Shown here piece by piece: positions 18,271-31,659 of a DNA stretch of 64,000 nucleotides. Position 1 is the first letter of the stretch; every line of letters starts with the position of its first letter. Position numbers and translations under genes: made by a program. The notes below the pieces were generated by a model. That model ran no database searches. It was given only the letters and a program-made list of their open reading frames with translations, and was not told the origin of the DNA. The DNA is taken from positions 288,013 to 352,012 of the IMG/VR virus record IMGVR_UViG_3300046787_000200; one strand, 5' to 3'.

Positions 18271-18274
18271 AAAA

Positions 18275-18390: not shown

Positions 18391-18400
18391 CTATACAAAA

Positions 18401-18477: not shown

Positions 18478-18481
18478 AATT

Positions 18482-18567
18482 TGGTGCGACTGGCCGGACT
18501 CGAACCGGCACGCTATTACGGCGAGAGATTTTAAGTCTCTTGTGGCTACCAATTACACCACAGTCGC
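18482..18567 (-). tRNA. tRNA-Leu(TAA)
   Basis: Loop CTTAAAA, long variable arm, CCA. Confidence 0.95.
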
Positions 18568-18586
18568 AAAAACTTTTTCAACTAAC

Positions 18587-18634
18587 TTTTTAAAGAACAA
18601 GTTGTATTATATATCAAAAACTATTTATTGTCAA
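18587..18634 (-). promoter_or_regulatory. Sigma70 promoter TTGACA-17-TATAAT plus boxA-like TTGTTCTTTAAAAA
   Basis: Hexamers at 18629-18634 and 18606-18611; boxA at 18587-18600. Confidence 0.85.
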
Positions 18635-18639
18635 ATGAA

Positions 18640-18851
18640 TTTGTAAGTAGTTCTCCCATAGTTATAAGAACCATTCACCCGTTTATACAAGACCGGTCGG
18701 GACTCGGTACGTCACTTGGGATACTAATCCAGTTAGCAACCAATCTGCACCGATCTTCCGATCGGTCGGGAGTTGAACCCGTCCCCTTCTACTATATCAG
18801 TTGTTCGAACAAACCTTTATAGCGTGACATTCTCTTGCTGACACTTACAAA
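18640..18851 (-). ncRNA. Candidate ~210-nt structured RNA with a T-loop module
   Basis: Closing stem TTTGTAAGT/ACTTACAAA; CGGG-TTCAACT-CCCG; ACCGATC-GGAA-GATCGGT. Confidence 0.5.
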
Positions 18852-18949
18852 ACTTTTTGTGTATAAGCATGACCAAACCTGCTACTTATACTTCAGACAC
18901 CTTACCTTGATGCGTGGCGTTGTGGTCAACCCATGTGTCTTACTAAACT

Positions 18950-19026
18950 TGGCGCACCGTAGGGGACTCGAACCCCTGGCCTCCACAGTGACAGTGTGGC
19001 GATCTAACCAACTGAGCTAACGGTGC
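18950..19026 (-). tRNA. tRNA-Asp(GTC)
   Basis: Loop CTGTCAC, G73, CCA. Confidence 0.95.
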
Positions 19027-19031
19027 AAAAA

Positions 19032-19256
19032 CTTTGATTGACTACTTACACTTTCGGCCGTCAATCAAGGCAATGAATTTCTGAGTCGCATTTGATTACA
19101 CGGCATATACGCCCGTCCGTGACGTTACGGTTGTTAATTTACCTGCAGGACGCATTAACAACTATCTTACATTTCTGCCGGGCGTGATTTACAAGGTTAT
19201 CCCCGACCCCCTTGACTGACCCTCTTGTCAGCGTGTGCCGCTTGTTACAGCAGTTC
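19032..19256 (-). ncRNA. Candidate multi-stem ncRNA
   Basis: CGGCA/TGCCG, ACGCCCG/CGGGCGT, GTTGTTAAT/ATTAACAAC, CAAGG/CCTTG and CTGAC/GTCAG stems. Confidence 0.5.
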
Positions 19257-19257
19257 T

Positions 19258-19342
19258 TGGTGGAGATGGTAAGATTCGAACCTACTCACCCGAAAGAATT
19301 GATTTACAGTCAACCGCGCCTCGCCGTCTGCGCCGCATCTCC
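19258..19342 (-). tRNA. tRNA-Tyr(GTA)
   Basis: Loop CTGTAAA, variable arm, CCA. Confidence 0.92.
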
Positions 19343-19348
19343 AAAAAC

Positions 19349-19424
19349 TATTCTGAAACACACTATCCTCTCTACCCATGTACCTTGGGACAGGCTTTTA
19401 CTGTGCGAAATGTGTTTTAGAATA
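19349..19424 (-). repeat. Inverted-repeat stem with variable cargo, copy 4
   Basis: TATTCTGAAACACACT...AATGTGTTTTAGAATA on the + strand. Confidence 0.8.
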
Positions 19425-19429
19425 ATACA

Positions 19430-19730
19430 GTAATACACGGCGTTAAACTGTCGGCCTATGCCCGCTTAACTTCTGTACTGTAACAGCTCTTTCCGCTAAC
19501 AACACTTTTCCTACCCCTACTGGACCGACTTTGCTTATCGTTCGTCACATTGGTCACGGTGCGCTTTCGCGGTGCGTGTATGTGAAGCCCGGGAAGTCTC
19601 TCCCGGGTCGGTTTCCATCTACTCATCTTACTAAGTGTTGTCTTAGTATCTTGACGCAATCGGAACAGTACTCCGATATCTACACTAAGGTACCCTAGTG
19701 TCGTTCTTATCTAGTATTGAACTATGCGAA
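19430..19730 (-). ncRNA. Candidate ~300-nt structured ncRNA
   Basis: Long-range ACAACACTT/AAGTGTTGT, CCGAC/GTCGG, CCCGGGA/TCCCGGG and CGC-GAAA-GCG; GC-rich. Confidence 0.5.
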
Positions 19731-19734
19731 TTTT

Positions 19735-19809
19735 TGGAAGAGCCACGGGGAATCGAACCCCGCTTCTCAGGATGAAAACCTGATGTCCTAACCGATAGAC
19801 GATGGCTCC
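19735..19809 (-). tRNA. tRNA-Glu(TTC), atypical loop TTTTCAT
   Basis: Cloverleaf, CCA. Confidence 0.85.
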
Positions 19810-19811
19810 AT

Positions 19812-20029
19812 CTATATGTAAACACACTATGGGAACTACACTTCTAATATAAGACCGTCTCTTATATTTTCAGTTTTGTCATTACTGCCTAACTACCCGT
19901 CACGTTCAACATTGCGCTACGCACTTTGTTCATACGCTTCTTGCACTCTATGAAACCCAGTTTCGTCCACTGGCTGATTTCAATAGAGTACCTAACGGAT
20001 CAGGTAACCTTTAATATGTTTGCATATAG
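19812..20029 (-). repeat. Inverted-repeat stem, copy 5, with ~180-nt structured cargo
   Basis: CTATATGTAAACACACT...AATATGTTTGCATATAG on the + strand. Confidence 0.7.
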
Positions 20030-20066
20030 TCTCCTGAACTTAACAGGAGCTATATGAAAAATTAAC

Positions 20067-20218
20067 TTTTTAAAGAACGTTGTTGATTTCTCAACTCATG
20101 CTATGATTGTAGCACAATTTTGATTTATTGTCAAATTCTTTTTTTGTATCTCTGTTTCCCAAGAACTTCTTCAATCAATCTAAGTATCTATTGTAGCACC
20201 AAGTTGATTTATTGTCAA
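20067..20218 (-). promoter_or_regulatory. rrn-like leader: tandem sigma70 promoters, boxB-like hairpin and boxA
   Basis: TTGACA-17-TACAAT at 20190-20218 and 20106-20134; GTTGA-GAAA-TCAAC at 20082-20095; GTTCTTTAAAAA at 20067-20078. Confidence 0.8.
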
Positions 20219-20238
20219 CCTATTCGATAAATAATCAA

Positions 20239-20831
20239 ATGATGATACCAATTAACTTGCCCAAACCATCAAACAGGACCATGGCATACATCAACTATTT
20301 CACGCAACAGAATTTACAAAAAAAATTGAATAATTCTAAAGAATGGTTCAACACTACTCAAAGACAAAAAATAAACTGTGCCTCAGGCTATTTAGTCCCT
20401 GACAAGATTATAACATCATTGTCACATGAGGAATATGTCATTTTTTTCCTGATGAAAATTTTGATATATCGATTGGTATATTACAAAATGTTTCTATCAA
20501 CGAACCGGTAGCCTTTGTTCCTCCACATATCGATCGGGGTAGAACCCTTGGCTTAATGTTTATTGTTGAAACAGGTGGTATTAACACAACTACTACATTT
20601 TATAAAACGCCACATGATGAATACACTCCGCAACAAACAGTTATGGTAGATTACAATGATTTAGAATCTGTATATTCGATTAAAACATTGAAGGATCAAT
20701 GGTACCTCATTGACGTTCAACAATTTCATAGTGTAGGAAATATTGAAACGCATCGTATATTATACAGTATAAATTTCTATGGAATTACTTATTCTAATTT
20801 CAAAGAAAAATATAAAAACTATATAATATAG
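20239..20831 (+). CDS. 2OG-Fe(II)/cupin-like protein split by a -1 frameshift at the T7 run 20441-20447
   Basis: The -1 frame reads FPDENF...PPHIDRGRTLGL into ORF 20556..20831 (QFHSV), completing HxD...H. Confidence 0.6.
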
Positions 20832-20833
20832 TT

Positions 20834-20908
20834 TGGTCCGGGGTGCAGGAATCGAACCCACATTCATCGGGTAGAAGCCGATTGTATTATCCATTATACT
20901 AACCCCAG
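20834..20908 (-). tRNA. tRNA-Arg(TCT)
   Basis: Loop CTTCTAC, CCA. Confidence 0.9.
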
Positions 20909-20929
20909 ATAAATTTCTAACTTGCCTCT

Positions 20930-20958
20930 ATTATAGTGTATTGTTGATTTATTGTCAA
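20930..20958 (-). promoter_or_regulatory. Sigma70 promoter TTGACA-17-TATAAT
   Basis: Perfect consensus. Confidence 0.85.
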
Positions 20959-20970
20959 CAATTATTTTAT

Positions 20971-21046
20971 TGGCTCCCCTACGTGGGCTCGAACCACGGA
21001 CATTTTGATTAACAGTCAAACGCTCTACCGACTGAGCTATAGGAGA
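20971..21046 (-). tRNA. tRNA-Asn(GTT)
   Basis: Loop CTGTTAA, G73, CCA. Confidence 0.95.
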
Positions 21047-21053
21047 ATAAATT

Positions 21054-21133
21054 TGGGGCAGGGTTCAAACCTACCGCATTACATACCTTTATCGTTGTAA
21101 CTCTGCACTATGTTATAGCCATTGTGTGCCTGC
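21054..21133 (-). ncRNA. Degenerate tRNA-like unit ending in CCA
   Basis: T-arm GGTAGG-TTTGAAC-CCTGCC directly followed by CCA; no canonical anticodon loop. Confidence 0.4.
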
Positions 21134-21140
21134 ATTTTCT

Positions 21141-21215
21141 TGGTGCCCCAGGTTAGAATCGAACTAACTACCTATCGCTTACAAGGCGAGTGCTCTACCA
21201 GTGAGCTACAAGGGC
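21141..21215 (-). tRNA. tRNA-Thr(TGT)
   Basis: Loop CTTGTAA, CCA. Confidence 0.95.
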
Positions 21216-21235
21216 TTTGTCTTTTATTTAACTGA

Positions 21236-21264
21236 AGTATATCACAACAAAACTTTTTTGTCAA
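21236..21264 (-). promoter_or_regulatory. Sigma70 promoter TTGACA-17-TATACT
   Basis: Near consensus with extended -10 TG. Confidence 0.8.
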
Positions 21265-21283
21265 GCCTCATTGTGATATCTTT

Positions 21284-21844
21284 CTAGCTTAGGAGAATTC
21301 TACTATGCTTGGGAACACCTGCTAACAAATATTCCATTTGATCTGCAAGAATAGTTCTATGTTGTAAAATCATATTTTCATAATGATTCGGTACATACGG
21401 TGCGTACAGCAATTCCATACGTGCTTCTTTCAAAGTCTTGTGACCCTTCTTACTGTTACATTCTTTGCAAGCAGTAACTACGTTCATCCAGGTGTTTTCA
21501 CCACCTTTACTCTTTGGATGAATGTGGTCACGACTTAAGTTATTGTAATTCGCAAAGTGCTCACCGCAATATGCACATACATGCCTATCACGACCAAACA
21601 ATGTTCTGTTGGTAAGTGCAACACATGAATGTTTATATGGATTGAATCCGTGACCTTTAATAGCGATAATGCTAGAAGTTTCTAAGTAACTTTCGCTACC
21701 GTCATTCTGTACACCACCACGATATCTAGCCACAACTTCACCCATTGACCATGCGATGGCATCTTTGGCTTTGTAGGTAATTGCGTCATCATATGAGATC
21801 CATTGTCTTGGAACTCCCGAGATATCTAGTGCTAGAACAGCCAT
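21284..21844 (-). CDS. HNH endonuclease (McrA-like)
   Basis: RD..CAYCG...SRDHI.PKSKGG..W.NVVTAC..CN..K. Confidence 0.9.
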   Translation of the reverse strand: MAVLALDISGVPRQWISYDDAITYKAKDAIAWSMGEVVARYRGGVQNDGSESYLETSSIIAIKGHGFNPYKHSCVALTNRTLFGRDRHVCAYCGEHFANYNNLSRDHIHPKSKGGENTWMNVVTACKECNSKKGHKTLKEARMELLYAPYVPNHYENMILQHRTILADQMEYLLAGVPKHSRILLS

Positions 21845-21893
21845 GGTGTACTCCTTTTCTTGCTATTGTCACTAATTGTATTTAATGTCCTAT

Positions 21894-21968
21894 TGGCGGG
21901 TCCTGCAGGAATTGAACCCACATCCCGAAGTTCGAAGCATCGTATTCTATCCATTGAACTAAGGACCC
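21894..21968 (-). tRNA. tRNA-Arg(TCG)
   Basis: Loop CTTCGAA, A20-type D loop, CCA. Confidence 0.85.
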
Positions 21969-22948
21969 ATGTTTCTATTATACACCTTTACGATTTCTTG
22001 TAAAGTTTTGTTCTTCCATTCTATATTTGGCATATCAGCCATTATTTCTTTAACAGTCAATGCTTGCAATAATGGATGAGAACATAAGTATTCATTTAGT
22101 ACTTTTGTATGTCTAAATTTAAAAATTTCATCTTTAAATTTTAAATTTGATTGAGCACCCGCATATGTAGGATGATAACTCTTTGCAAAACTAAAATCAA
22201 ATTCCCCTAAATTGGATTCTTGTGTAATTTTTTCTAGCACATCAAAAATATCATTATCATATATTTTCATTAAATCCAGTGAGTAGAAATATTTAGGTAT
22301 TTCATGTGGGGTGACATAGTGTTCACTATTTACTTCATGCGGATTATGTTCGTTACGTAAATTAAACCAGTGGGCATAATTATTACGTAATGGTGTTAAA
22401 TTAAAAGTTTCTGTTTGTGTTTCTAACCCAAATGATATAGGAAAAATAGTATCATAATGTTCAATAAACTTATCACGTGTTACTATATCGTTAGGTGGAT
22501 TAAAAAAATCTATATTGTATATTTCATTAAACTTTTTAGCATGGAAATACAACGGCCATTTAGTAATGGCATTTAAATTGCCTATACATCTAGTATAATG
22601 ATTATCTGCAGTGATATGAATGATTACTGGATCTCTATCCATATTCATAATTGTATCAATAGAAGTTATAATACTACCTCTATCCCAACCATTCACTAAA
22701 AATATTTTCTTTTCTTTCGGTTGATTTAGTATCAACCAATACATTATTTCTCGTATAGTAGAATGTGTTGGTATTCTATAATGCAAATGACTTGTACCTG
22801 TACCACCGTATTTCTTATTATCAGAAACATTTAACGGATCATCTACTGTTGTAGTAGATAAATTATTTTCACTCTTACTTAAACACCAGCTTAAGTAACT
22901 ACCTGAATATCCCGGTGGGTATATCAAGTAAACATTTTTATTCAACAT
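21959..22948 (-). CDS. Sulfotransferase-like P-loop protein
   Basis: IYPPGYSGSYL; stop lies inside the 5' end of tRNA-Arg. Confidence 0.55.
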   Translation of the reverse strand: MLNKNVYLIYPPGYSGSYLSWCLSKSENNLSTTTVDDPLNVSDNKKYGGTGTSHLHYRIPTHSTIREIMYWLILNQPKEKKIFLVNGWDRGSIITSIDTIMNMDRDPVIIHITADNHYTRCIGNLNAITKWPLYFHAKKFNEIYNIDFFNPPNDIVTRDKFIEHYDTIFPISFGLETQTETFNLTPLRNNYAHWFNLRNEHNPHEVNSEHYVTPHEIPKYFYSLDLMKIYDNDIFDVLEKITQESNLGEFDFSFAKSYHPTYAGAQSNLKFKDEIFKFRHTKVLNEYLCSHPLLQALTVKEIMADMPNIEWKNKTLQEIVKVYNRNMGP

Positions 22949-23210
22949 TGTCTATAATTTCAATATTAGGAGAAGTAATTCCTAAATTAGCAGTTTCTGT
23001 TAATATAAATTGCTTAAATTCTTCTGCCGCGGCTTGATCTAACCAATACCGTTTAGTTGTAACATCATCTATTACATCATATAAACCATTGGTCTTGTCG
23101 GTTGCTACTGCATTAGATATAAAATCCATTCTATCTTCATTCAAACTATCATGTCCAACTTGTGATTCTAGCGAGTCCCATTTAATTATTGTGGCTTTAG
23201 TCCAAACCAT
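22938..23210 (-). CDS. Small protein of a paralogous family (RYWLDQAAAEEF)
   Basis: Similar to 24878..25180; AGGAG SD. Confidence 0.7.
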   Translation of the reverse strand: MVWTKATIIKWDSLESQVGHDSLNEDRMDFISNAVATDKTNGLYDVIDDVTTKRYWLDQAAAEEFKQFILTETANLGITSPNIEIIDNVE

Positions 23211-23262
23211 ATATTTCTCCTATGCAAACATATTTAGTTACAGTGGTTCAACGATAATTATT

Positions 23263-23338
23263 TGGTGCCAACGAATGGGATCGAACCATTGACGCACAGA
23301 TTTTCAGTCTGTCGCTCTACCATCTGAGCTACATCGGC
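23263..23338 (-). tRNA. tRNA-Phe(GAA)
   Basis: Loop CTGAAAA, CCA. Confidence 0.95.
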
Positions 23339-23959
23339 TTATTTTTTATAGAAAATACTATTATGAACTTTTGAAATAACCATTTCAAATCCCAAGTCAA
23401 GTAATCTATCTCGTAATACATTAGGTACAGCTTCTATAATAAACAATTTACATTTAGTAAGTTTGTTTAAATCAACGTCATTGAATAGCATTTTAAGAAA
23501 TTCTGATTCTGGTTTTGCCTCAACATCTATACTAATTGCATCAACATCCCAACCTACATAATCTAATAACGTGTTAACTGTAGTTGTATTGGTAATGATA
23601 GGGTATTGTCTATCTGTTTGTTTATAGTAATATTGTTGGCTCATCCATGATGGATCAAAACTTGAAGAACCTCCTGTATCTACTGACAGATAAAAATCTG
23701 ATAGTCCACTAGTAGGTGCTACTGCACCGTTAAAGATTTTAACCTTATCTCCATATGACATGACATTGTTAAGCAATCTAGTACATGACATTGGATTAGG
23801 TTCGCAGTAAACACCGTTCCATCCTTTTTCTAGTAGCCCCCAAAATGGCTCGTCATCAGAGTTTGGGCCGCCGTCACATGCACCTATTTCTAGGAATTTT
23901 CCAGTGGGTTGATTCTTAAAAAAATCAATTACAAATTGTTTTTCAATTATGTCGTTCAT
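23339..23959 (-). CDS. FkbM family methyltransferase (likely start MNDIIEK)
   Basis: FLEIGACDG, GWNGVYCEPNP, SIDVE; the longer track ORF runs through three tRNA genes. Confidence 0.85.
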   Translation of the reverse strand: MNDIIEKQFVIDFFKNQPTGKFLEIGACDGGPNSDDEPFWGLLEKGWNGVYCEPNPMSCTRLLNNVMSYGDKVKIFNGAVAPTSGLSDFYLSVDTGGSSSFDPSWMSQQYYYKQTDRQYPIITNTTTVNTLLDYVGWDVDAISIDVEAKPESEFLKMLFNDVDLNKLTKCKLFIIEAVPNVLRDRLLDLGFEMVISKVHNSIFYKK

Positions 23960-24000
23960 TATAATATTTAATAACATTAAAGTGTTATATAAATTATTTA

Positions 24001-24075
24001 TGGTGGATGATGCAAGGATCGAACTTGCGGCCTTCTCAATGTCACTGAGATATTCTACCTCTGAAATAATCATCC
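24001..24075 (-). tRNA. tRNA-Val(GAC), atypical loop GTGACAT
   Basis: Cloverleaf, CCA. Confidence 0.85.
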
Positions 24076-24081
24076 TAAAAT

Positions 24082-24160
24082 TGGTCTGGATGGGAGGATT
24101 CGAACCTCCAGCCTCCGACTTCCAAGGCCGGCCGTCTACGCAGATTGACAATACACCCAG
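24082..24160 (-). tRNA. tRNA-Pro(TGG), second divergent copy
   Basis: Loop CTTGGAA, C1:G72, A73, CCA; unusual D arm. Confidence 0.8.
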
Positions 24161-24167
24161 ATATGTT

Positions 24168-24242
24168 TGGTGGAGACCGAGGGAGTTGAACCCTTCTAGA
24201 CAAGAATCTTGCAAGGATTCCCCGTAGCCCGCTACTGTCCCC
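24168..24242 (-). tRNA. tRNA-Ala(TGC)-like, second copy with minimal D arm
   Basis: G3:U70, GAATC-CTTGCAA-GATTC, CCA. Confidence 0.7.
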
Positions 24243-24245
24243 AAT

Positions 24246-24620
24246 TTATCTTACTGCTTTCGCCCTTGCTTCTACCATCTCGTCAATGAAACATTTATCA
24301 ATGACGTTTGTATAGGTATCTGTATAGCTACTTGCGTGATCCACGACCCTATTGTCTGGTTCGTGGTATGTTCTAATTCTTTCAGAGCCTGCTAAGTTAC
24401 GCTCTTTATCTTTATGAAAATGTGCTTGTATACGACTTAAACAGGTTGTATATGCCGCTCGTTTATTATCTTCTCGGCTACGACTATTCGTACCGTTAGC
24501 TTGAATGCCTGTTGGCTCATGTATGCATCTGCAACAGTTTTGATGTTTGTTACGATGTTGTCCACCTTTGCCGGTGCCACTGAACCATTCATAGCGAAAT
24601 TGATCTTCTGTAATTTTCAT
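24246..24620 (-). CDS. GGQ peptide-chain-release-factor-like peptidyl-tRNA hydrolase (RF-1 domain only)
   Basis: SGTGKGGQHRNK...HEPTGI...RS...NK...ERIRTY..PDNRVVDH; lacks stop-codon recognition domain. Confidence 0.85.
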   Translation of the reverse strand: MKITEDQFRYEWFSGTGKGGQHRNKHQNCCRCIHEPTGIQANGTNSRSREDNKRAAYTTCLSRIQAHFHKDKERNLAGSERIRTYHEPDNRVVDHASSYTDTYTNVIDKCFIDEMVEARAKAVR

Positions 24621-24637
24621 ATGTGCCTTAAAAATAC

Positions 24638-24713
24638 TGGAGCCCCTAGATGGAGTCGAACCATCGACTTCTCTATACCAAAGAGATATTTTACCGTTGC
24701 AAACTATGGGGGC
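24638..24713 (-). tRNA. tRNA-Thr(GGT)
   Basis: Loop TTGGTAT, CCA. Confidence 0.88.
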
Positions 24714-24877
24714 AAAGGAGGGAGCCTAACTATCTGTCGTTACACAGCCTTGTTAGATTGTCTCGAACACAAGAGTTTAAGCTACCTATGCAATCATACT
24801 ATAGTGTCACACACCAGCGCAGTGTGCTAGATTACTCGGGACTCATCGTGCCGTCTATCCCAAAAAAGTGAAGAAGA

Positions 24878-25180
24878 TTAACTAGCGTCAGTAATTTGTA
24901 TATTTACTATGCTAACACCTGCTGCCGGAGACAGAATAGTATTTAAATATGTTTCCCATTCTTCCGCGGCAGCTTGATCCGACCAATAACGTTCTGTTAC
25001 ATAAGTTGGATTTGTTGACAGTTCATGCAATATACCGTCTGTTTTTCCTTCTGTAACCATAGCATTGATCTTTACTTTAGAATCAATTATTGGTTGTTCT
25101 CTTAAATTAATATTACTAGCAGTTTGAAATATAGTAGCGTAGGTTGCCCATTCGCATACAAGTTTTTTTGTTAAACTCAT
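24878..25180 (-). CDS. Small protein of a paralogous family (RYWSDQAAAEEW)
   Basis: Similar to 22938..23210; upstream ATAAATA and AGGA. Confidence 0.7.
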   Translation of the reverse strand: MSLTKKLVCEWATYATIFQTASNINLREQPIIDSKVKINAMVTEGKTDGILHELSTNPTYVTERYWSDQAAAEEWETYLNTILSPAAGVSIVNIQITDAS

Positions 25181-25213
25181 TTTTTAGTCCTAAACATATA
25201 TTTATCTAGTTTT

Positions 25214-25291
25214 TGGCAGAGGGTACTGGATTCGAACCAGTGATCATGGAGTCAAAGTCCAATGCTTTAGGCCAAACTAAGCTAACCCCCA
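25214..25291 (-). tRNA. tRNA-Gln(TTG)
   Basis: Loop CTTTGAC, G73, CCA. Confidence 0.9.
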
Positions 25292-25300
25292 ACAAAATTT

Positions 25301-25376
25301 TGGCATCCTGTACGGGAATCGAACCCGTCTCTACAACTTGAAAGGCTGTTGATCTAAACCGATAATCTAACAGGAT
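25301..25376 (-). tRNA. tRNA-Glu(TTC), second copy
   Basis: Loop CTTTCAA, G73, CCA. Confidence 0.9.
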
Positions 25377-25450
25377 ATAAATTTGGCGCCGATTTTTGTC
25401 ATTTTAACTCAGGCTAACGTACACTCCCTGAGATTAGTTGCAACACAACT

Positions 25451-25527
25451 TGGTAGCCTCACTGTGACTCGAACACAGGACCCCCGCCTTATCAAGACGG
25501 TGCTCTAACCAACTGAGCTATGAGGCT
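25451..25527 (-). tRNA. tRNA-Ile(GAT)
   Basis: Loop TTGATAA, CCA. Confidence 0.95.
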
Positions 25528-25539
25528 ATAAATACTACT

Positions 25540-25704
25540 ATGAAAACCTACAAGAATCTTACTCCTAGTGGTTTACATTTTCATTTGTCTTTAAGTGATG
25601 AAGGTGTATGTTGTATCATAGTCTATGATATCTTTGATTGTGAATCACAACTTCATTACTTCACTGATATCAATAAAGCATTGCGCTTTATCAACAATTT
25701 ATAA
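25540..25704 (+). CDS. 54-aa protein oriented against the tRNA array (MKTYKNLTPSGLHFHL...)
   Basis: TATAAATA 5 nt upstream of ATG; fills the inter-tRNA gap. Confidence 0.55.
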   Translation: MKTYKNLTPSGLHFHLSLSDEGVCCIIVYDIFDCESQLHYFTDINKALRFINNL

Positions 25705-25706
25705 TT

Positions 25707-25781
25707 TGGTGGATGTAAGTAGATTTGAACTACTGACCTGCTCCGTATGAAGGAGATGCACTACCGCTGTGCTATACATCC
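25707..25781 (-). tRNA. tRNA-Met(CAT), elongator-like
   Basis: Loop TTCATAC, paired 1:72, A73, CCA. Confidence 0.85.
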
Positions 25782-25784
25782 ATT

Positions 25785-25858
25785 TGGTGCCCCTTGACAG
25801 AATTGAACTGCCGTATCCTGATTACAAAACAGGCGTAATACCGTTATACGAAAAGGGC
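25785..25858 (-). tRNA. tRNA-Thr(TGT), second copy
   Basis: Loop TTTGTAA, CCA. Confidence 0.88.
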
Positions 25859-25865
25859 GATATCT

Positions 25866-25942
25866 TGGGGTGCTTGATGGGATTCGAACCCACGCATATC
25901 GGAATCACAATCCGAGGTCTTGACCGCTTGACGACAAGCACC
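25866..25942 (-). tRNA. tRNA-His(GTG)
   Basis: G-1:C73, loop TTGTGAT, CCA. Confidence 0.93.
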
Positions 25943-25948
25943 ATATGT

Positions 25949-26040
25949 TGGAGGAAGATGTGAGATTCGAACTCACGGAACCATTTCTGATCCGTCTGAT
26001 TTCAAGTCAGGTGCATTAAACCGGGCTCTGCCAATCTTCC
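25949..26040 (-). tRNA. tRNA-Ser(TGA)
   Basis: Loop CTTGAAA, long variable arm, CCA. Confidence 0.93.
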
Positions 26041-26041
26041 G

Positions 26042-26227
26042 TTATACTTTTTTGTCTATATGATTGTTATGATGTGTAGGCTCTAACTCTCCTACTCTGT
26101 TATATAGATACTGAACAACTTCAATAACTTTCTTATTAGTTGCAGGATCTACTAACATACTGTAAACCGTGTTGCGATATTGGTGATTAACCATATCGTT
26201 TACTGAGGTTACACTTTGAACTATCAT
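26042..26227 (-). CDS. Hypothetical protein
   Basis: TAAATA just upstream of ATG. Confidence 0.5.
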   Translation of the reverse strand: MIVQSVTSVNDMVNHQYRNTVYSMLVDPATNKKVIEVVQYLYNRVGELEPTHHNNHIDKKV

Positions 26228-26240
26228 ATAGTATTTAACA

Positions 26241-26324
26241 TACCATATAGAAACACACTAGCGATTGGTTGATCTCCAACCTTTACCCACGCTTCTCACC
26301 TGACTAATGTGTTTTTATATGATA
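26241..26324 (-). repeat. Inverted-repeat stem with variable cargo, copy 6
   Basis: TACCATATAGAAACACACTAG...CTAATGTGTTTTTATATGATA on the + strand. Confidence 0.85.
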
Positions 26325-26461
26325 TTGAGGGTGGGTAACGATCCCACTAACTATCGGTGCGATGCCGATTGTGCTACGCTCCATATACAATTAGTTTACT
26401 CTGTTTCGAACCAGACCAACTGTATATCTTTGCACTAACTTTCCATGTCGTTTTCCTCTTT

Positions 26462-26589
26462 ACCATATAAAAACATTTTCAATACTCAACGCAATGCTGG
26501 CACAATGTTCTTTCGCCCCTGCCAGGGAACCGAACAGAGCACCGAAAATTTGTGGCCGATGATGCCCGTCAAAAATGTTTTTATATGGT
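26462..26589 (-). repeat. Inverted-repeat stem with variable cargo, copy 7
   Basis: ACCATATAAAAACATTTT...AAAATGTTTTTATATGGT. Confidence 0.8.
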
Positions 26590-26650
26590 GGCTCCTTACT
26601 TCGATACGAGCGAATCGTGTCGGTCTGGTGGAGTTAACCACGGAGTTAAA

Positions 26651-26734
26651 CTACCATATAGAAACACACTCCCGGAGACGCATTACCTCCCCGTACCGTA
26701 GTATTATGAATTCAAGTGTGTTTTTATATGGTAG
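26651..26734 (-). repeat. Inverted-repeat stem, copy 8, sharing the CCA end of tRNA-Lys
   Basis: CTACCATATAGAAACACACT...AGTGTGTTTTTATATGGTAG. Confidence 0.85.
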
Positions 26735-26805
26735 AAGCACAGGGACTTGAACCCTGAACCTACCGGTTAAAAGCCGGTTGCTCTAGCCAGTTGAGCTATA
26801 CTTCC
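26729..26805 (-). tRNA. tRNA-Lys(TTT)
   Basis: Loop CTTTTAA, CCA. Confidence 0.95.
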
Positions 26806-26812
26806 ATAATTA

Positions 26813-26887
26813 TGGTCCCTCCACTCAGAATTGAACTGAGTCTTGTCGGATTAAGAGTCCGCTATGCTACCGTAACATCTTAGAGGG
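26813..26887 (-). tRNA. tRNA-Lys(CTT)
   Basis: Loop CTCTTAA, CCA. Confidence 0.85.
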
Positions 26888-26952
26888 ATGACTGTATTAA
26901 ATTGTCTTTAATGTGCCATCCCTAGACCATACTTGGAAGTCTAAGAATGACA

Positions 26953-26976
26953 CTATCGTTTACCTGAACGTTTCAT
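26953..26976 (-). CDS. Mini leader peptide MKRSGKR
   Basis: Strong AAGGAG SD, own sigma70 promoter, 14-bp hairpin starting right after TAG. Confidence 0.6.
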   Translation of the reverse strand: MKRSGKR

Positions 26977-26998
26977 GTCGTTCTCCTTTAAAAAATGA

Positions 26999-27027
26999 AG
27001 TATACTAGACAACTGAATTATTGTCAA
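26999..27027 (-). promoter_or_regulatory. Sigma70 promoter TTGACA-17-TATACT
   Basis: Near consensus. Confidence 0.8.
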
Positions 27028-27031
27028 ATAT

Positions 27032-27108
27032 TGGTGCGACCTAAGAGAGTCGAACTCCTGACCCCCAAGTTCGTAGCCTGGTGCTCTATCCATCTGAGCT
27101 AAGGTCGC
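27032..27108 (-). tRNA. tRNA-Arg(ACG)
   Basis: Loop CTACGAA, CCA. Confidence 0.95.
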
Positions 27109-27121
27109 ATATAAATACAGA

Positions 27122-27658
27122 ATGAATCCATTCTGCGTTAATTTAAATTTAGATATACCCCCTTTAAGACCTGATATAGATATCAATAACTTTTCTAAAG
27201 ATTATTGGAATACTATTCCTTTATCATATATCAATACAAATTTAATCTCTTTTCTATTACAAAAAGGATTAGATTTGCCTAAAGCGGCTACTTTCTATTC
27301 TGAAGGTGAATGCATTCATCCTATACATATTGATGGCATAGCAGAATCTGATATGGTTAAAATCAATTGGGTATACGGTGATAACCATATGATGAATTGG
27401 TATTCATCTAATATAATTAAGCCATATAGTCTTGAAAAAAATGATAGAACATATGTCTATTATAAACCACATGAAGTTAATCTAGTGCATTCTCAACAAG
27501 TAGGATGTCCTAGTATAGTTCAAACAGGAATACCGCATAACGTAGTAAATTACTACGGAACACGTAGATGTATATCTATTGCATTGTCACATCGCCAATC
27601 TAAAAAGCTTGTAACAATGGATGAAGCATTGCATTTGTTTAATGAGATTACGGCTTAA
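27122..27658 (+). CDS. 2OG-Fe(II)/cupin-like protein
   Basis: IHIDG...INW...PSIV..G.PHNV.N...R..ISI; TATAAATA at 27110-27117. Confidence 0.65.
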   Translation: MNPFCVNLNLDIPPLRPDIDINNFSKDYWNTIPLSYINTNLISFLLQKGLDLPKAATFYSEGECIHPIHIDGIAESDMVKINWVYGDNHMMNWYSSNIIKPYSLEKNDRTYVYYKPHEVNLVHSQQVGCPSIVQTGIPHNVVNYYGTRRCISIALSHRQSKKLVTMDEALHLFNEITA

Positions 27659-27694
27659 CCCGTCAGAAGGGTCAGTGTGCTGTTCATCCGTAAA

Positions 27695-27757
27695 GCATTC
27701 TAAAACATACTAGATGCGGCATTTCAGCCCATATCAACTTAGTATGTTTTAGAATGC
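27695..27757 (-). repeat. Inverted-repeat stem with variable cargo, copy 9
   Basis: GCATTCTAAAACATACTA...TAGTATGTTTTAGAATGC, 18-bp perfect stem. Confidence 0.8.
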
Positions 27758-28047
27758 CGTGTATTGCTACACGACATGTTAGGGTCGATACCCTAACCAG
27801 TGATTTTAGTCTCTGCGTTATCGCCACAGATTTCATCCTACTGTCCGCCCATTCTATACATTTTGCGCTGTATCACGGCTCTCGTTGCCTATTCACGCTA
27901 TCTATCAATCTTCAAGTAAGTACTTGTCTTTCTCTCTTAACTGATAGATTTTAGCACGGTCAATCTTATTTTGTATCAACTGTGCTAGTTGCTCCTTTGT
28001 CAGAACATGAGTGCTAAACCAATCATGTTTTGCTTCAGAAGTTTTGT

Positions 28048-28076
28048 ATTCTATCTCTTTATCCATTTATTGTCAA
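28048..28076 (-). promoter_or_regulatory. Sigma70 promoter TTGACA-17-TAGAAT
   Basis: Near consensus with TTGACAATAAAT signature. Confidence 0.75.
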
Positions 28077-28094
28077 ATTTTCTTTCCACTAAGT

Positions 28095-28126
28095 AAAAAC
28101 CCTGAGAGTCTTGCGATTCCCAGGGT
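28095..28126 (-). terminator. Intrinsic terminator / putative attenuator hairpin
   Basis: ACCCTGGGAATC-GCAA-GACTCTCAGGGT followed by TTTT. Confidence 0.8.
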
Positions 28127-28155
28127 CTTGATAATTTTGTTATGATGCTAACTTG

Positions 28156-28293
28156 TTACCTCGTCCCCGGGCTATGTTCCTGTGAATCATTTGTGCCGCG
28201 AATACTTGTTGGATATGCTGGTGCAAAGGATACATTGGCTATTGTTGACCATTGTCCCATATGTTTCAGCAAATTACAAGTTTTATTCATCAT
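28156..28293 (-). CDS. 45-aa leader peptide containing all 20 amino acids
   Basis: MMNKTCNLLKHMGQWSTIANVSFAPAYPTSIRGTNDSQEHSPGTR; CTAAATA 7 nt upstream of ATG; last codons complementary to the terminator 5' arm. Confidence 0.65.
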   Translation of the reverse strand: MMNKTCNLLKHMGQWSTIANVSFAPAYPTSIRGTNDSQEHSPGTR

Positions 28294-28369
28294 AGTCTTT
28301 TATTTAGTCCTGGTTTAAAATAAGTGCAAATAACGGTTGTTTTTTACACCTTTTTTCAATTCATGCTGA

Positions 28370-28398
28370 AGTATAGCATTGTTTTGAATTAAAGTCAA
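28370..28398 (-). promoter_or_regulatory. Sigma70 promoter TTGACT-17-TATACT upstream of the leader peptide
   Basis: Near consensus with extended -10 TG. Confidence 0.7.
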
Positions 28399-28424
28399 TA
28401 AGTTTTTTAAGTAGTTTACCCAAA

Positions 28425-29156
28425 TTATTGTATTTTGAAATGTTCTGCAACACCTGCACGTTGTGCCCACTCTTTGTTAAAAGCACCATCGATACGAAGG
28501 CTCCATGCAGTATGCAATGGGTGCCCCTCACTTGCATGTACATTGTTAGAATCAAACACACATGCTCTAGTATTAGAGTAATGCTTTTCATTGGTCTCTG
28601 GATCAAACACTACTAACTGCTTAGGAATGACACCGGTAAGCCAAATAAAAGGATCTTTATTTATACCATGGTATTTGTCCGGGTAATCTCTATGTAGTGC
28701 TGTTTTTTGACAAGGTTCATTTATCCAAAAAATAACTCTACCGTATTCAGTGAAACATCCTTGTGCATCTATCCAATCAAATAAAAATCTAAATTGCTCA
28801 TCAAATGCAAATTTAGAAGTATATTGGCTCATATGCTTCTTAGAATAAGTAGCAGGGTATCCTATATTCCCTCTTAATACAAAATTAGTACCCAACGTAA
28901 CAGTTCCTGTCAGCTTACTGTAAAATAAAGCTTCATCTGGAGCTAAGTCCGGATTTTCTTTCATAACATCATCACGTTTCTTATATACTGATAACTTAGA
29001 TTTATCGTATATCGTATCTTGTGAAGTACCAGAAGGTCTAAAATGGTGTCTATTTTTTGCTAAGGTCCTACATATTTGATCATTTATAGCATCAAACCCT
29101 GCCATATCCAAATGATCTTCTAAATTGCAAAATATCTGATTGTTAATTAAATTCAT
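28425..29156 (-). CDS. 2OG-Fe(II)/cupin-like oxygenase
   Basis: LHRD...FD...HAS....SLRIDG. Confidence 0.6.
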   Translation of the reverse strand: MNLINNQIFCNLEDHLDMAGFDAINDQICRTLAKNRHHFRPSGTSQDTIYDKSKLSVYKKRDDVMKENPDLAPDEALFYSKLTGTVTLGTNFVLRGNIGYPATYSKKHMSQYTSKFAFDEQFRFLFDWIDAQGCFTEYGRVIFWINEPCQKTALHRDYPDKYHGINKDPFIWLTGVIPKQLVVFDPETNEKHYSNTRACVFDSNNVHASEGHPLHTAWSLRIDGAFNKEWAQRAGVAEHFKIQ

Positions 29157-29192
29157 ACTTTATATATGATAGTATGAGGGGCCAGAAATATT

Positions 29193-29489
29193 TTACACAT
29201 CCTTTTGCCAAAATGATACAATATCATTAGCTGTGTTATAGGCTTCACGGTCTCTTTGGCATGCTACTAACACAGGATCATTAATAAATTGCTGAAGTGC
29301 CGCATAATCTTTCCATATGCCAGAGTAAGTGCGTATTAATCCGTCATCTGAAAATGTTTTTGATACACTTTCTCGTAACCCAGTTGCTACATAATTTTCT
29401 TCTATATGTTGCTTAACTTCTTCTGGAAAGTCCCAGAAAGGGATGTTTGGATCTGTTCTGAAAGATAATCTAGTCTCTTTGTAACTCAT
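29193..29489 (-). CDS. Small hypothetical protein
   Basis: CAGGAG SD, upstream ATAAATA; loosely like the 22938/24878 family. Confidence 0.65.
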   Translation of the reverse strand: MSYKETRLSFRTDPNIPFWDFPEEVKQHIEENYVATGLRESVSKTFSDDGLIRTYSGIWKDYAALQQFINDPVLVACQRDREAYNTANDIVSFWQKDV

Positions 29490-29513
29490 TGTTTGTTCTC
29501 CTGATAACTATAT

Positions 29514-30219: not shown

Positions 30220-31659
30220 TCATTCTATTTCCCGATACATAAGTGCATATTCATGTGCAGTTTTATATCCTATTTTTGGTCCTGCATGATCTACCATTTG
30301 CTTATTAGATAATAATATAGTAGAGTATACTTTTTTGCGATTTTGAGATTTTGCAATGATATCTACACATTTATGCAATTGTTTATGAATGCTATGACCA
30401 CGATGATCCTTGTTTACATATGCTAATTTAATTAGTAAATCTTCCTTGTATGATGCAGTATGAAAGAATATGCCGGCAATAACTTCATTGCCTTTTTTAA
30501 GTAATGCGCCACCGTCAATAAGATGAGGCGTTGGTTTATTGATATAATCTTCTGTGTCAACTCGATATAACGCAAACATCTTTTCATACTCAGTAACTAA
30601 TGCTACATTTGAGTGACTAAACATTACATATTCATAATCTAAATATTTCTCAACATCGTGTTCAGTCGCTATGTTTACATCCGGAGAATTTATAATAACT
30701 TCACCGTTACTTTGTGTTTCGTTATTCATTGATACGAACCGTGAATCTTCTGCATATATCCACTCGCTATAATCTTTATGCGTTGACCTATTATTTTCTA
30801 AAAAGTCTACTAAATCCCAATAAGGTACTGACACTTTTGTTTCTTTAATCATACATGAGTCTTTAAACCAAGTGGGATATGATTCATACCCAGTCAGTTT
30901 ACCATACCATATGATATCATTTTTAAAATGCTTAGCCTTCATCATGCCCTTACCGTAATAATTCCAATAGTTACCTGGCTTAAGTATCGACCCGCGTAAA
31001 AAAGCTAATTTATTTTCATGGTAATACTGTATAGAATTACAGAATGCTTTAACAATGTCATCAGTATAATAACTTGCTATCGTTTCAGGGCTGTACGGAA
31101 AATCAATAATCTGTCTACTCTTACCCATCATTCTAAAACGCTGTTGCATCGTTTCAAAATAATTGCAGTATATTGACATCTTCTGACTAGTAGTACCTAA
31201 AATTTCAGGATCATTTGCTCCTTGGGTAATGATAGGATAATTACCTTCTAAGTGCTGACTTAACCATTCGAATGGATAATGATACATTGAAAATGGATGT
31301 TCAGTTTTACTACGTGCTATCCATTCTTCTTTATGTTCATCTATATTGATATCGACAACACGAACTTTAAACCCAAAGAACTTTTCACATTCACGTACAT
31401 GGGCTAATTCAGCATCACTATATCCAACAGAGTTTAAGAAAACATATTCTGCATCTACCCCCATATCTAAAAAAGTTCTTGCTATAACTTGGCTGTCAAC
31501 ACCAGAACTAAACAAAACATATACTTGACCATATGTGTTTTTAATCCTTACCGCATCATTATTAGATTCGGTGCGAAAATCAGAAAAATCTCTATCCGGT
31601 GCTTGATATCGGACAATACATTTCTGTCCTTCTAATATATACTCTAAACCTTGTTTCAT
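30220..31659 (-). CDS. PP-loop ATPase fused to a C-terminal GNAT acetyltransferase domain
   Basis: LFSSGVDSQ; C-terminal AYVNKDHRGHSIHKQL. Confidence 0.65.
   Translation of the reverse strand: MKQGLEYILEGQKCIVRYQAPDRDFSDFRTESNNDAVRIKNTYGQVYVLFSSGVDSQVIARTFLDMGVDAEYVFLNSVGYSDAELAHVRECEKFFGFKVRVVDINIDEHKEEWIARSKTEHPFSMYHYPFEWLSQHLEGNYPIITQGANDPEILGTTSQKMSIYCNYFETMQQRFRMMGKSRQIIDFPYSPETIASYYTDDIVKAFCNSIQYYHENKLAFLRGSILKPGNYWNYYGKGMMKAKHFKNDIIWYGKLTGYESYPTWFKDSCMIKETKVSVPYWDLVDFLENNRSTHKDYSEWIYAEDSRFVSMNNETQSNGEVIINSPDVNIATEHDVEKYLDYEYVMFSHSNVALVTEYEKMFALYRVDTEDYINKPTPHLIDGGALLKKGNEVIAGIFFHTASYKEDLLIKLAYVNKDHRGHSIHKQLHKCVDIIAKSQNRKKVYSTILLSNKQMVDHAGPKIGYKTAHEYALMYREIE

Follow-up and report, generated by a model that had tools for sequence, protein, structure and literature searches.

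Does the small ORF that precedes the tRNA array of a giant phage encode an ordinary peptide, or does it belong to a regulatory leader that samples every amino acid before the tRNA genes are reached? This question was raised by a sequence-only reading of a 64,000-nucleotide stretch of the IMG/VR virus record IMGVR_UViG_3300046787_000200 (positions 288,013 to 352,012, here called the window). In it, a 45-codon ORF with all 20 amino acids and 33 different codons was proposed to act with an overlapping antiterminator and a terminator as an attenuator, and thereby as a candidate sensor of any tRNA loss. All the sequence features described in that reading are present, and the observation is confirmed. 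The interpretation, in contrast, is only partly supported, since the module passes most of the comparative tests that had been set for its refutation, but several points had to be corrected, as described below.

Organization of the locus

The locus comprises the following features, given in transcriptional order along the minus strand (window coordinates).

28370-28398 (-), promoter P1 (TTGACT, 17-nt spacer, TG-TATACT), upstream of the leader ORF
28315-28359 (-), 5'-UTR hairpin, variable, shortened or absent in relatives
28300-28311 (-), invariant motif AGGACTAAATAA, 7 nt upstream of the ATG, which may be a translation-initiation element or a phage promoter
28156-28293 (-), leader ORF of 45 codons plus stop, containing all 20 amino acids, the full set being complete at codon 39
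28156-28171 (-), predicted 5' strand of the antiterminator, made of CCCGGGG (28171-28165) and GGTAA (28160-28156), which includes the stop codon
28139-28152 (-), predicted apical mini-hairpin of the antiterminator (GTTA...TAAC), highly conserved in sequence
28119-28134 (-), predicted 3' strand of the antiterminator, made of TTATC (28134-28130) and CCCTGGG (28125-28119), shared with the 5' arm of the terminator
28095-28126 (-), predicted intrinsic terminator, a 12-position stem with one A-C mismatch, GCAA loop and TTTTT
28048-28076 (-), promoter P2 (TTGACA, 17-nt spacer, TAGAAT) of the recurrent TTGACAATAAAT type
27905-28066 (-), ORF2 (53 aa), with its ATG in the spacer of P2 and its codons 5-7 forming the -10 box
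27690-27905 (-, limits approximate), conserved structured RNA-like element between ORF2 and the tRNA array, with no Rfam match
27122-27658 (+), opposite-strand 178-aa ORF between the module and the first tRNA, specific to this phage and some relatives
12438-27108 (-), array of 34 tRNA genes (ARAGORN) for all 20 amino acids, interspersed with ORFs and about 10 near-consensus promoters

In a consensus scan P1 scores 10 of 12 with an extended -10, and a sigma-70-type promoter lies upstream of the ORF in all aligned relatives, at variable distance. The 5'-UTR hairpin was seen in the fold of 28365-28085, but in the alignment of relatives it is long, short or deleted, and it is therefore probably not essential. 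The motif AGGACTAAATAA is invariant in 79 distinct module sequences and is kept as AGGAATAAATAG in the distant locus L146 (L numbers denote loci retrieved in our searches). The sequence-only reading had suggested that control may apply mainly to a late transcript driven by CTAAATA, but CTAAATA is not enriched in the window, and its role as a late promoter is conjecture. A second GGACTAAATA at 20389-20398 proved not to be a second module.

The terminator hairpin (28126-28099) starts 29 nt after the stop codon, has a predicted energy of -19.1 kcal/mol (z = -5.1), and is followed by TTTTT ending at 28095. When its 3' arm is left out of the fold, the pairing of CCCGGGG with CCCTGGG, extended by GGTAA with TTATC, is the minimum-free-energy structure (-18.9 kcal/mol, z = -3.8). 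The array is not, as had been stated, directly downstream of the terminator, because the first tRNA starts 1,048 nt after the stop codon, with P2, ORF2, the structured element and the opposite-strand ORF in between.

Conservation of the module and of the complete amino-acid set

Within the window alone the evidence that the composition of the peptide is more than chance is weak. The leader is the only one of 91 ORFs of 40-50 aa with all 20 residues, which is roughly what multiple testing would give, as 1.3% of 45-aa windows of the real proteins of this phage also have all 20 (0.36% under an i.i.d. model). The codon diversity to which the sequence-only reading drew attention is ordinary, since 8 of 41 ORFs of similar length have 33 or more codons, and the signal is at the amino-acid level.

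In order to evaluate the module comparatively, we searched for relatives. Megablast, blastn and tblastn against a collection of 50,697 phage records found nothing except tRNA matches, leaving no cultured relative for comparison. The first relative, L002, was found through the upstream 243-aa gene, but it lacks both the module and the array and is uninformative. The module was then found in more than 140 metagenomic loci of freshwater jumbo phages, whereas the hits L144 and L145 were discarded as spurious because they lie inside an opposite-strand gene. In 87 of 87 loci with at least 1.5 kb downstream a same-strand tRNA follows within 357-1537 nt, and in 0 of 99 loci with at least 3 kb upstream is there a tRNA upstream, so that the module always sits at the 5' head of a tRNA array.

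All 20 amino acids are present in 64 of 67 distinct peptides from the loci, in 143 of 154 after a word-indexed database search, and in 174 of 193 after an exhaustive HMM search (41-62 aa, down to about 33% identity), while about 10% of the family members lack one or two amino acids. Among full-length representatives of the 50%-identity clusters, 38 of 48 have all 20 (P = 3e-12 against the site-independent profile null of 0.30, and 3e-5 against 0.5). A tree-based null, with the same tree and the same number of changes per column, gave a mean of 26 of 66 and a maximum of 59 in 6000 simulations, against 63 observed (P<5e-4). A simulation on the tree of the broad family was not relied upon, because its parsimony root had only 19 residue types, which biases it against retention. 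A stratified test of singleton versus redundant substitutions gave only z = -2.4, which is supportive but weak on its own.

Residues relocate rather than disappear. When Cys, His, Tyr, Asp, Glu or Phe is missing from its usual column, it is present elsewhere in 31/38, 21/24, 45/45, 93/99, 119/119 and 19/19 peptides, respectively, and second copies are uncommon when the usual one is present. The three uncompensated losses among the close relatives (L036, L113 and L115) sit on tip branches. Given these results, and the conservation of the ORF and its frame in more than 190 variants, chance combined with shared ancestry is strongly disfavoured and we regard it as very unlikely.

The ORF also shows a coding signature, with 16, 15 and 28 variable sites at codon positions 1, 2 and 3, a pN/pS of 0.37, and purely synonymous variation at K10, H11, R32, G33 and E39. 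However, it has no ordinary SD spacing, as AGGA lies 14 nt upstream of the ATG, against 6-9 nt for other genes of the phage, and its translation is inferred from sequence alone. The peptide core (W15, F23, the YPTSIRG motif and G43) is strongly conserved, and this core and the invariant synonymous sites are not explained by a pure codon-sampling role.

Mutually exclusive RNA pairings

A hairpin is present in 86 of 87 distinct downstream regions, 76 of them with at least 5 U. In 86 of 86 variants the 5' arm of the terminator is predicted to pair with the last codons of the ORF when the 3' arm is withheld. RNAalifold on a plain MAFFT alignment of the antiterminator returned no structure, because the subfamilies are offset by 1 nt, and we therefore used per-sequence folds and a covariance-model alignment. 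In this structure-guided alignment 93.6% of cells are paired (97.7% in helix 3, the apical mini-hairpin), with 21 compensatory cells against 3.8 in shuffles (0 of 500 shuffles reach this), and slid controls reach at most 60%. Covariation in helix 1 is limited, and five of the 78 classified variants carry a C-U mismatch (CCCCGGG), created by a synonymous Pro change.

CCCGGGG is conserved in two reading frames, and subfamilies use different helices for the same pairing, namely TAGGTAA/TTATCTA, GGAATAA/TTATTTT, TAGA/TCTA, an 18-bp helix in the 57-aa subfamily, and GGGTTTAGAT/ATCTAAACCC in L146. The terminator itself is conserved with compensatory changes, for example CCCCGAG/CTCGGGG in L113 and CCCCGGAAAC/GTTTCCGGGG in L149. 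The stop codon lies in or at the end of the antiterminator strand, and the terminator arm starts 23-34 nt after the stop in every variant listed. The full amino-acid set is complete 1-4 codons before that strand in 74 of 74 cases, but this is only suggestive, as the per-peptide null is 0.33 and the lineages are not independent.

An alternative explanation is that this is an ordinary small phage protein gene, the peptide having a function of its own, and its completeness and the complementary stretch being by-products. The conserved core, the pN/pS value and the possession of its own promoter and terminator agree with this, as does P2, which makes the downstream genes independent of it. Nevertheless, we consider it unlikely, because it explains neither the reappearance of rare residues, nor a retention of all 20 that exceeds every simulation, nor CCCGGGG in two reading frames, nor the unrelated sequences at the ORF end that always complement the terminator arm, nor the constant position of the gene as first element of a tRNA array while its upstream neighbours vary. 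In addition, PHROG, Pfam, NCBIfam and PDB sequence searches of the leader, ORF2 and neighbours gave no significant hits. A RiPP precursor was rejected because no neighbouring enzyme is conserved: the upstream neighbour is a 243-aa orphan in the window, radical SAM in L146, NifU/DUF2452 in L148 and an AAA ATPase in L149, and only the downstream tRNA array is constant.

The region between the terminator and the tRNA genes

In the window, and in most relatives, a strong promoter follows the terminator at once. P2 scores 11 of 12, its extended -35 recurs at 6 exact sites on the minus strand, and it is present in 82 of 86 distinct downstream regions with a recognisable hairpin. With the about 10 further strong promoters inside the array, the contribution of the attenuator to tRNA supply would be small in this window, where an opposite-strand gene also separates it from the first tRNA. 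The attenuator therefore cannot be the main gate of tRNA transcription here. Terminator strength tracks P2, since all 4 variants without P2 have at most 4 U, and all 76 variants with at least 5 U have P2.

ORF2 is translatable only from transcripts that start upstream, because its start codon lies within P2. It has 63 distinct homologues of 48-56 aa, and the ATG or TTG sits at offset +10 in 76 of 80 regions, with an SD-like AGAGGA/AAAGGA upstream of the -35. For the structured element, RNAalifold predicts 51 pairs, 11 with changes on both sides, in 6 sequences, and the element is recognisable in the distant L146 and L149. The 178-aa ORF shows weak similarity to an ORF of L002 and is absent in L005-L011, where tRNA-Arg follows the structured element directly.

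These observations leave room for a translation-coupled RNA switch whose output is not transcription termination but mRNA stability, processing of the structured RNA or tRNA precursor, or translation of ORF2, the hairpin and U tract then acting mainly as a 3' stabiliser or an insulator. The start codon and SD-like element of ORF2 lie just after the hairpin, a conserved structured RNA follows, and in some relatives the U tract is only 3-4 nt long and followed by CCA, which makes a poor terminator. However, most variants have a canonical hairpin with at least 5 U, the alternative pairing specifically sequesters the 5' arm of the terminator, which is the classic attenuator design, and nothing pairs with the ORF2 start region in the folds made here. 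We thus consider this possibility unlikely.

Proposed mechanism

In our view, and with moderate confidence, the segment from P1 to the terminator is a ribosome-mediated transcription attenuator, whose leader peptide is selected to contain at least one codon for each of the 20 amino acids. Host RNA polymerase would start at P1, followed by a ribosome translating the leader. If this pioneer ribosome reaches the end of the ORF in time, it would melt and cover the antiterminator strand, the terminator would fold, and the P1 transcript would end at about 28095. If it is delayed at any earlier codon, because some aminoacyl-tRNA is scarce or has been cleaved, the antiterminator would form first and transcription would read through. 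In the window this would provide an mRNA from which ORF2 can be translated, and extra transcription into the structured RNA and the tRNA array, whereas in the few relatives without P2 read-through is the only evident source of the structured RNA and the first tRNAs. Our analysis establishes the sequence features and their conservation, the selection for all 20 amino acids, the mutually exclusive pairings and the fixed position at the head of the array. In contrast, function is only inferred from these, including translation of the leader in vivo, termination and read-through, the direction and size of the response to charged tRNA, and the physiological trigger, sensing of tRNA loss among them.

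Some aspects fit this model less well. Each amino acid is usually represented once (7, Cys6 and Trp15 among them, occur only once in the peptide of the window), which according to classical theory gives low sensitivity to partial starvation. The last residue that completes the set lies only 2-3 codons before the antiterminator strand (2 codons for Glu39 in the window), so that a ribosome stalled there would probably still mask it. Without any ribosome the antiterminator would also form, and the default state would be read-through. No convincing segment 1:2 hairpin was found, as only a weak 5-bp CGCGGC/GCCCG pairing appears in one fold, together with a possible GGT/ACC versus GGC/GCC covariation in the alignment of relatives. 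A general sensor of translation activity, reporting only whether ribosomes are translating at all, for example during host shut-off or under ribosome-targeting defences, would agree with the poor sensitivity of single codons and with a geometry that responds to any delay, including failure to initiate. It is nevertheless unlikely, since such a sensor has no need to retain or regain Cys, His, Tyr, Asp and the others, nor to complete the set before the antiterminator strand.

A more far-reaching reading, which we put forward only tentatively, as possible but not favoured, is that a clade of freshwater jumbo phages carries a universal sensor of the tRNA pool, a leader that must be decoded by all 20 aminoacyl-tRNA families within the time RNA polymerase needs to reach the terminator. 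Loss of any one tRNA, through a host anticodon nuclease or decay of host tRNAs late in infection, for example, would switch on read-through into ORF2, the structured RNA and the replacement tRNAs of the phage, forming a feedback loop that restores decoding.

Comparison with known systems

Large phage tRNA sets covering all amino acids have been discussed as a counter-measure to host tRNA-targeting defences or to loss of host tRNAs (PMC10264068). The genomic context is the same, but that work concerns the tRNAs themselves, and our full-text literature searches found no description of a regulatory leader ORF at the head of such arrays. The module would also be the first regulatory element described for phage tRNA arrays, whose purpose (codon supply versus escape from tRNA-cleaving defences) is still debated, and it gives that debate a direct handle, because the device predicts which conditions should induce the array. 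At 140 nt it is small and self-contained, amenable to E. coli or cell-free systems, and could serve as a compact reporter of tRNA depletion.

T-box riboswitches, upstream of aminoacyl-tRNA synthetase and amino-acid genes, also couple tRNA status to a choice between terminator and antiterminator, but they bind one specific uncharged tRNA without translation and have defining motifs (a specifier loop in Stem I and the T-box sequence in the antiterminator bulge). No Rfam family other than tRNA reaches E<=1 in 26500-29500, and nothing credible appears in 27640-27930. Here sensing would go through the ribosome and would cover all tRNAs.

Regulatory arrest peptides such as TnaC, SecM and the Erm leaders (PMC8429421, PMC4737659, PMC5499644) are likewise short leader ORFs with a conserved nascent-peptide sequence that controls downstream expression, and the YPTSIRG core may hint at a nascent-chain effect. 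However, arrest peptides respond to one ligand or to a force signal, and completeness of the amino-acid set is not a feature of any of them.

In pyrBI-type attenuation of E. coli, a 44-residue leader of similar length works by a kinetic race between RNA polymerase and the leading ribosome, and the outcome depends on how closely the ribosome follows rather than on a special codon run. There, close coupling prevents terminator formation and the signal is UTP-dependent polymerase pausing, whereas here arrival of the ribosome is predicted to favour termination, and the variable is ribosome speed.

The leader-peptide attenuators of enterobacterial amino-acid operons (trpL, hisL, thrL, leuL, pheL, ilvL; see also PMC1183508 and PMC3082878) share with this module a short ORF in the 5' leader, translated in those operons, an intrinsic terminator after it, and an alternative hairpin that shares a strand with the terminator and overlaps the end of the ORF, so that ribosome position chooses between the two folds. 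This mechanism is well established, but every known case monitors one or a few amino acids for a biosynthetic operon, by tandem runs of the corresponding codons. The leader described here has no such runs and no clear segment 1:2 hairpin. It keeps instead, in most family members, at least one codon of every amino acid, sits in a phage, and precedes tRNA genes, a small ORF and a structured RNA, and would be the first attenuator that monitors decoding capacity as a whole.

Genomic context of the leader module

The window is part of a 352-kb viral contig, IMGVR_UViG_3300046787_000200, for which no close relative exists among deposited phage genomes. On the minus strand, the region at the head of the tRNA cluster holds, in order:

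28398-28370 (-), a sigma-70-type promoter, P1
a 5' hairpin
the motif AGGACTAAATAA
28293-28156 (-), the leader ORF, containing 20 residue types and 33 codons
28126-28099 (-), a hairpin with a GCAA loop, followed by TTTTT (predicted terminator)
28076-28048 (-), a strong promoter, P2
28066-27905 (-), a 53-codon ORF, ORF2
27905-27690 (-), a conserved structured RNA-like element
27122-27658 (+), an opposite-strand 178-codon ORF
27108-12438 (-), 34 tRNA genes for all 20 amino acids, found with ARAGORN

The terminator hairpin folds at -19.1 kcal/mol (z = -5.1). When its 3' arm is left out, the best fold pairs CCCGGGG in codons 41-43 of the leader ORF with CCCTGGG of the terminator, and GGTAA, which includes the stop codon, with TTATC, at -18.9 kcal/mol (z = -3.8). 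The translation of the leader ORF is exactly that given in the sequence-only reading, and the observation made there, of a leader with all 20 amino acids coupled to a terminator and an alternative pairing, is confirmed. Two of its details need correction, since 33 codons are ordinary for ORFs of this length, and the tRNA array, which had been placed directly downstream, is not adjacent but begins only after P2, ORF2, the structured element and the opposite-strand ORF. The last of these is inserted between the module and tRNA-Arg, is preceded by TATAAATA and followed by a terminator-like hairpin at 27778-27797, and is weakly similar (22% identity, E = 2e-5) to an ORF next to the homologue of the 243-aa gene (upstream of the module in the window) in the related locus L002.

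The leader is the only one of 91 ORFs of 40-50 codons in six frames that has all 20 residues. However, 1.3% of 45-residue windows of the phage's real proteins also have all 20, as do 0.36% under an i.i.d. model, and with hundreds of short ORFs available the single case proves nothing, so that the question had to be settled with relatives.

Relatives of the module and their position

A scan with ORF2 found 8 further viral contigs in which the whole module aligns, including P1, the motif, the ORF, the terminator and P2. A scan with an alignment of the leader peptides found 43 viral loci, a metagenome scan found 75 more, and a scan with a divergent 57-residue form of the peptide found 16 more, of which two (loci L144 and L145) proved spurious. 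In addition, a profile search of 5.8 billion proteins returned 84 cluster representatives, and an exhaustive HMM search of 1.84 billion representatives returned 50 clusters less than 50% identical to one another, all annotated at most as hypothetical proteins. Many of the source contigs are long, ranging from about 250 to 525 kb, and several lie near 350 kb, the size of the window's own contig. One very long contig (IMGVR_UViG_3300027749_002876, 524 kb) carries two different copies of the leader module (loci L023 and L029, at about 121-133 kb and 410-423 kb), which may be a genuine duplication or an assembly of two related phages.

In all 87 loci with at least 1.5 kb of downstream sequence, a same-strand tRNA gene follows the ORF within 357-1537 nt, whereas in none of the 99 loci with at least 3 kb upstream is there a tRNA upstream. 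The upstream neighbours differ between loci. In the window a weak QueC-like/PAPS-reductase-like gene lies upstream (30220-31659, minus strand; PHROG E about 3e-4), whereas a radical-SAM gene lies upstream in L146 (218-1201), a distant member of the family, and both may be deazapurine or tRNA-modification genes next to the array. The module therefore marks the 5' head of the tRNA array, and the array is its only constant partner.

Retention of all 20 amino acids

All 20 amino acids are present in 64 of 67 distinct peptides from the loci, in 143 of 154 after the word-indexed database search, and in 174 of 193 after the exhaustive HMM search (lengths 41-62, identity to the window's peptide down to about 33%), as well as in 38 of 48 full-length representatives of the 50%-identity clusters. 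Sampling each alignment column independently from the family profile gives all 20 in only 30% of draws, against which 38 of 48 has P = 3e-12, and even against 0.5 it has P = 3e-5. In order to allow for shared ancestry, we took 66 close relatives, a nucleotide tree and the parsimony number of changes per column, and placed the changes on random branches. On average 26 of 66 leaves kept all 20, with a maximum of 59 in 6000 simulations, whereas the observed value is 63, and the three real uncompensated losses all lie on tip branches. A stratified test of substitution rates at singleton versus redundant residues is supportive but weak (z = -2.4). A simulation on a tree of the broad family started from a root with 19 residue types, and was therefore not used. 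We conclude that the amino-acid set is under selection.

The most telling pattern is that residues move rather than vanish. When Cys, His, Tyr, Asp, Glu or Phe is absent from its usual column, it is present elsewhere in 31/38, 21/24, 45/45, 93/99, 119/119 and 19/19 peptides, respectively, while extra copies are uncommon when the usual one is present. Part of this reflects alignment offsets between subfamilies, but not all of it, since, for example, several peptides have lost the N-terminal Cys and carry one in the middle of the peptide instead.

Coding signature of the leader ORF

Among 49 distinct 135-nt versions of the ORF, the variable sites at codon positions 1, 2 and 3 number 16, 15 and 28, pN/pS is 0.37, and K10, H11, R32, G33 and E39 vary only synonymously, so the ORF looks translated. 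In contrast, the nearest SD-like AGGA lies 14 nt from the ATG, whereas other genes of the phage have GGAG or AGGA at 6-9 nt, or a TATAAATA-like motif just before the start codon. This T4-late-promoter-like octamer, TATAAATA, lies 2-5 nt upstream of five start codons in the window, at 6816, 11770, 13116 and 31659 (-) and 27122 (+), and ten of its 12 copies are on the coding strand, which may mean leaderless late mRNAs or an AT-rich initiation signal, although its overall count is not enriched. The AGGA.TAAATA motif upstream of the leader ORF is invariant across the family and persists in its most distant members, so it is functional, and may act in translation initiation or as a phage promoter; CTAAATA is not enriched in the window. 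The peptide core YPTSIRG (codons 27-34; 28192-28215, minus strand) is almost invariant, and its codons TAT, ACA, AGT and ATT show no synonymous variation in the 49 distinct sequences. A pure codon-sampling role does not explain this, which may reflect a nascent-peptide effect or an RNA element.

Conservation of the predicted RNA switch

In all 86 distinct 3' regions, folding without the 3' arm of the terminator pairs its 5' arm with the last codons of the ORF. CCCGGGG(A) is kept at the nucleotide level although it is read in two frames, giving ..PGTR-stop in one subfamily and ..RGTE-stop in another. Substitutions opposite the T of CCCTGGG are G-to-A in locus L047 and the PGNR subfamily, while locus L113 changes both terminator arms and the ORF strand together, and a synonymous CCG-to-CCC change creates a C-U mismatch in five variants. 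The second helix uses different sequence pairs in different subfamilies, and the 57-residue subfamily has an 18-bp helix with the stop codon in the apical loop. Among the distant members, L146 uses GGGTTTAGAT against ATCTAAACCC, and L149 has a different terminator, CCCCGGAAAC/GTTTCCGGGG, with CCGGGG at the ORF end.

In a covariance-model alignment of 70 sequences, 93.6% of cells are paired and there are 21 compensatory cells against 3.8 in shuffles, a value reached by 0 of 500 shuffles, while slid controls reach at most 60%; the alignment is fitted to the model, which favours the structure. The terminator arm begins 23-34 nt after the stop codon in every variant printed, and a ribosome at the stop would cover the antiterminator strand but not the terminator.

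Possible targets of the switch

About ten near-consensus sigma-70 promoters (11-12 of 12 matches) lie on the tRNA strand (12400-28400, minus strand), six of which have the identical extended -35 sequence TTGACAATAAAT, as in P2. In this window the attenuator therefore cannot be the main gate for tRNA transcription. ORF2 is a conserved protein with 63 distinct versions of 48-56 residues and no detectable homologue of known function, and is dual-coded with P2 (27905-28076, minus strand). Its ATG lies 10 nt into the promoter, in the spacer, and its codons 5-7 (I-E/Q-Y) spell the -10 box TAGAAT or TACAAT, while an SD-like AGAGGA or AAAGGA lies upstream of the -35. This arrangement holds in 76 of 80 distinct relatives, 8 of which use TTG as the start. 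Transcripts that start at P2 cannot encode ORF2, and only read-through transcripts from P1 can.

The structured RNA-like element, of about 215 nt, lies between ORF2 and the first tRNA in the window and aligns with L007:5163-5396, L006:5160-5351, L010:5148-5380 and L011:5148-5372 among the related loci, and is also recognisable in L146:3230-3300 and L149:3260-3340. It has long invariant runs and stems with compensatory changes, with 51 predicted pairs, 11 of them with changes on both sides, in only 6 sequences, and no Rfam family matches it. It is conserved more widely than ORF2 and may be a principal product of this transcription unit.

Four variants (loci L032, L033, L117 and L149) lack P2 and ORF2. 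In L117 and L149, the two that were scanned, no strong promoter precedes the first tRNA, so the attenuator would gate the structured RNA and the first tRNAs directly. Among 86 distinct downstream regions with a recognisable hairpin (for example L032:6190-6215, L117:4175-4200 and L149:3175-3205), the length of the U tract correlates with the presence of P2, since all 76 variants with at least 5 T have P2, and all 4 without it have 3-4 T followed by CCA (TTTCCA or TTTTCC). This suggests that terminator strength is tuned to whether an independent promoter follows.

Proposed mechanism and comparison with known systems

The mechanism we propose is a kinetic race. A ribosome that translates all 45 codons in step with the polymerase would occupy the antiterminator strand while the terminator is being made, and the transcript would end, whereas a delay at any earlier codon would leave the strand free, and transcription would continue. 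A single codon per amino acid suits an all-or-none loss of a tRNA better than graded starvation. This model has weak points, since the default state without any ribosome would also be read-through, and the residue that completes the set (Glu39 here) is only 2 codons ahead of the strand, so stalling there would probably not be sensed; completion precedes the strand by 1-4 codons in 74 of 74 variants. The conserved peptide core and the invariant synonymous sites also point to an extra constraint that we cannot explain. The sequence features, their conservation, the selection on the residue set, the competing pairings and the place at the head of the array come from the analysis itself, while translation of the leader, termination and read-through in the cell, and the response to tRNA loss, are inferred. 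The interpretation offered by the sequence-only reading, a sensor of any tRNA loss acting through attenuation, is partly supported. We hold the attenuator-sensor reading with moderate confidence, and the full feedback model, in which tRNA loss would switch on read-through into the phage's own replacement tRNAs, only as a tentative possibility.

The module is not a T-box and matches no other Rfam family. Full-text literature searches found no description of such a leader at phage tRNA arrays, the closest context being the proposal that phage tRNAs evade tRNA-targeting defences (PMC10264068). Its anatomy matches leader-peptide attenuators in three defining features, namely a short leader ORF, whose translation is inferred from its coding signature, an intrinsic terminator, and a mutually exclusive antiterminator that overlaps the ORF end. 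It departs from them in the fourth, having no run of regulatory codons but a complete set of amino acids, and also in what lies downstream.
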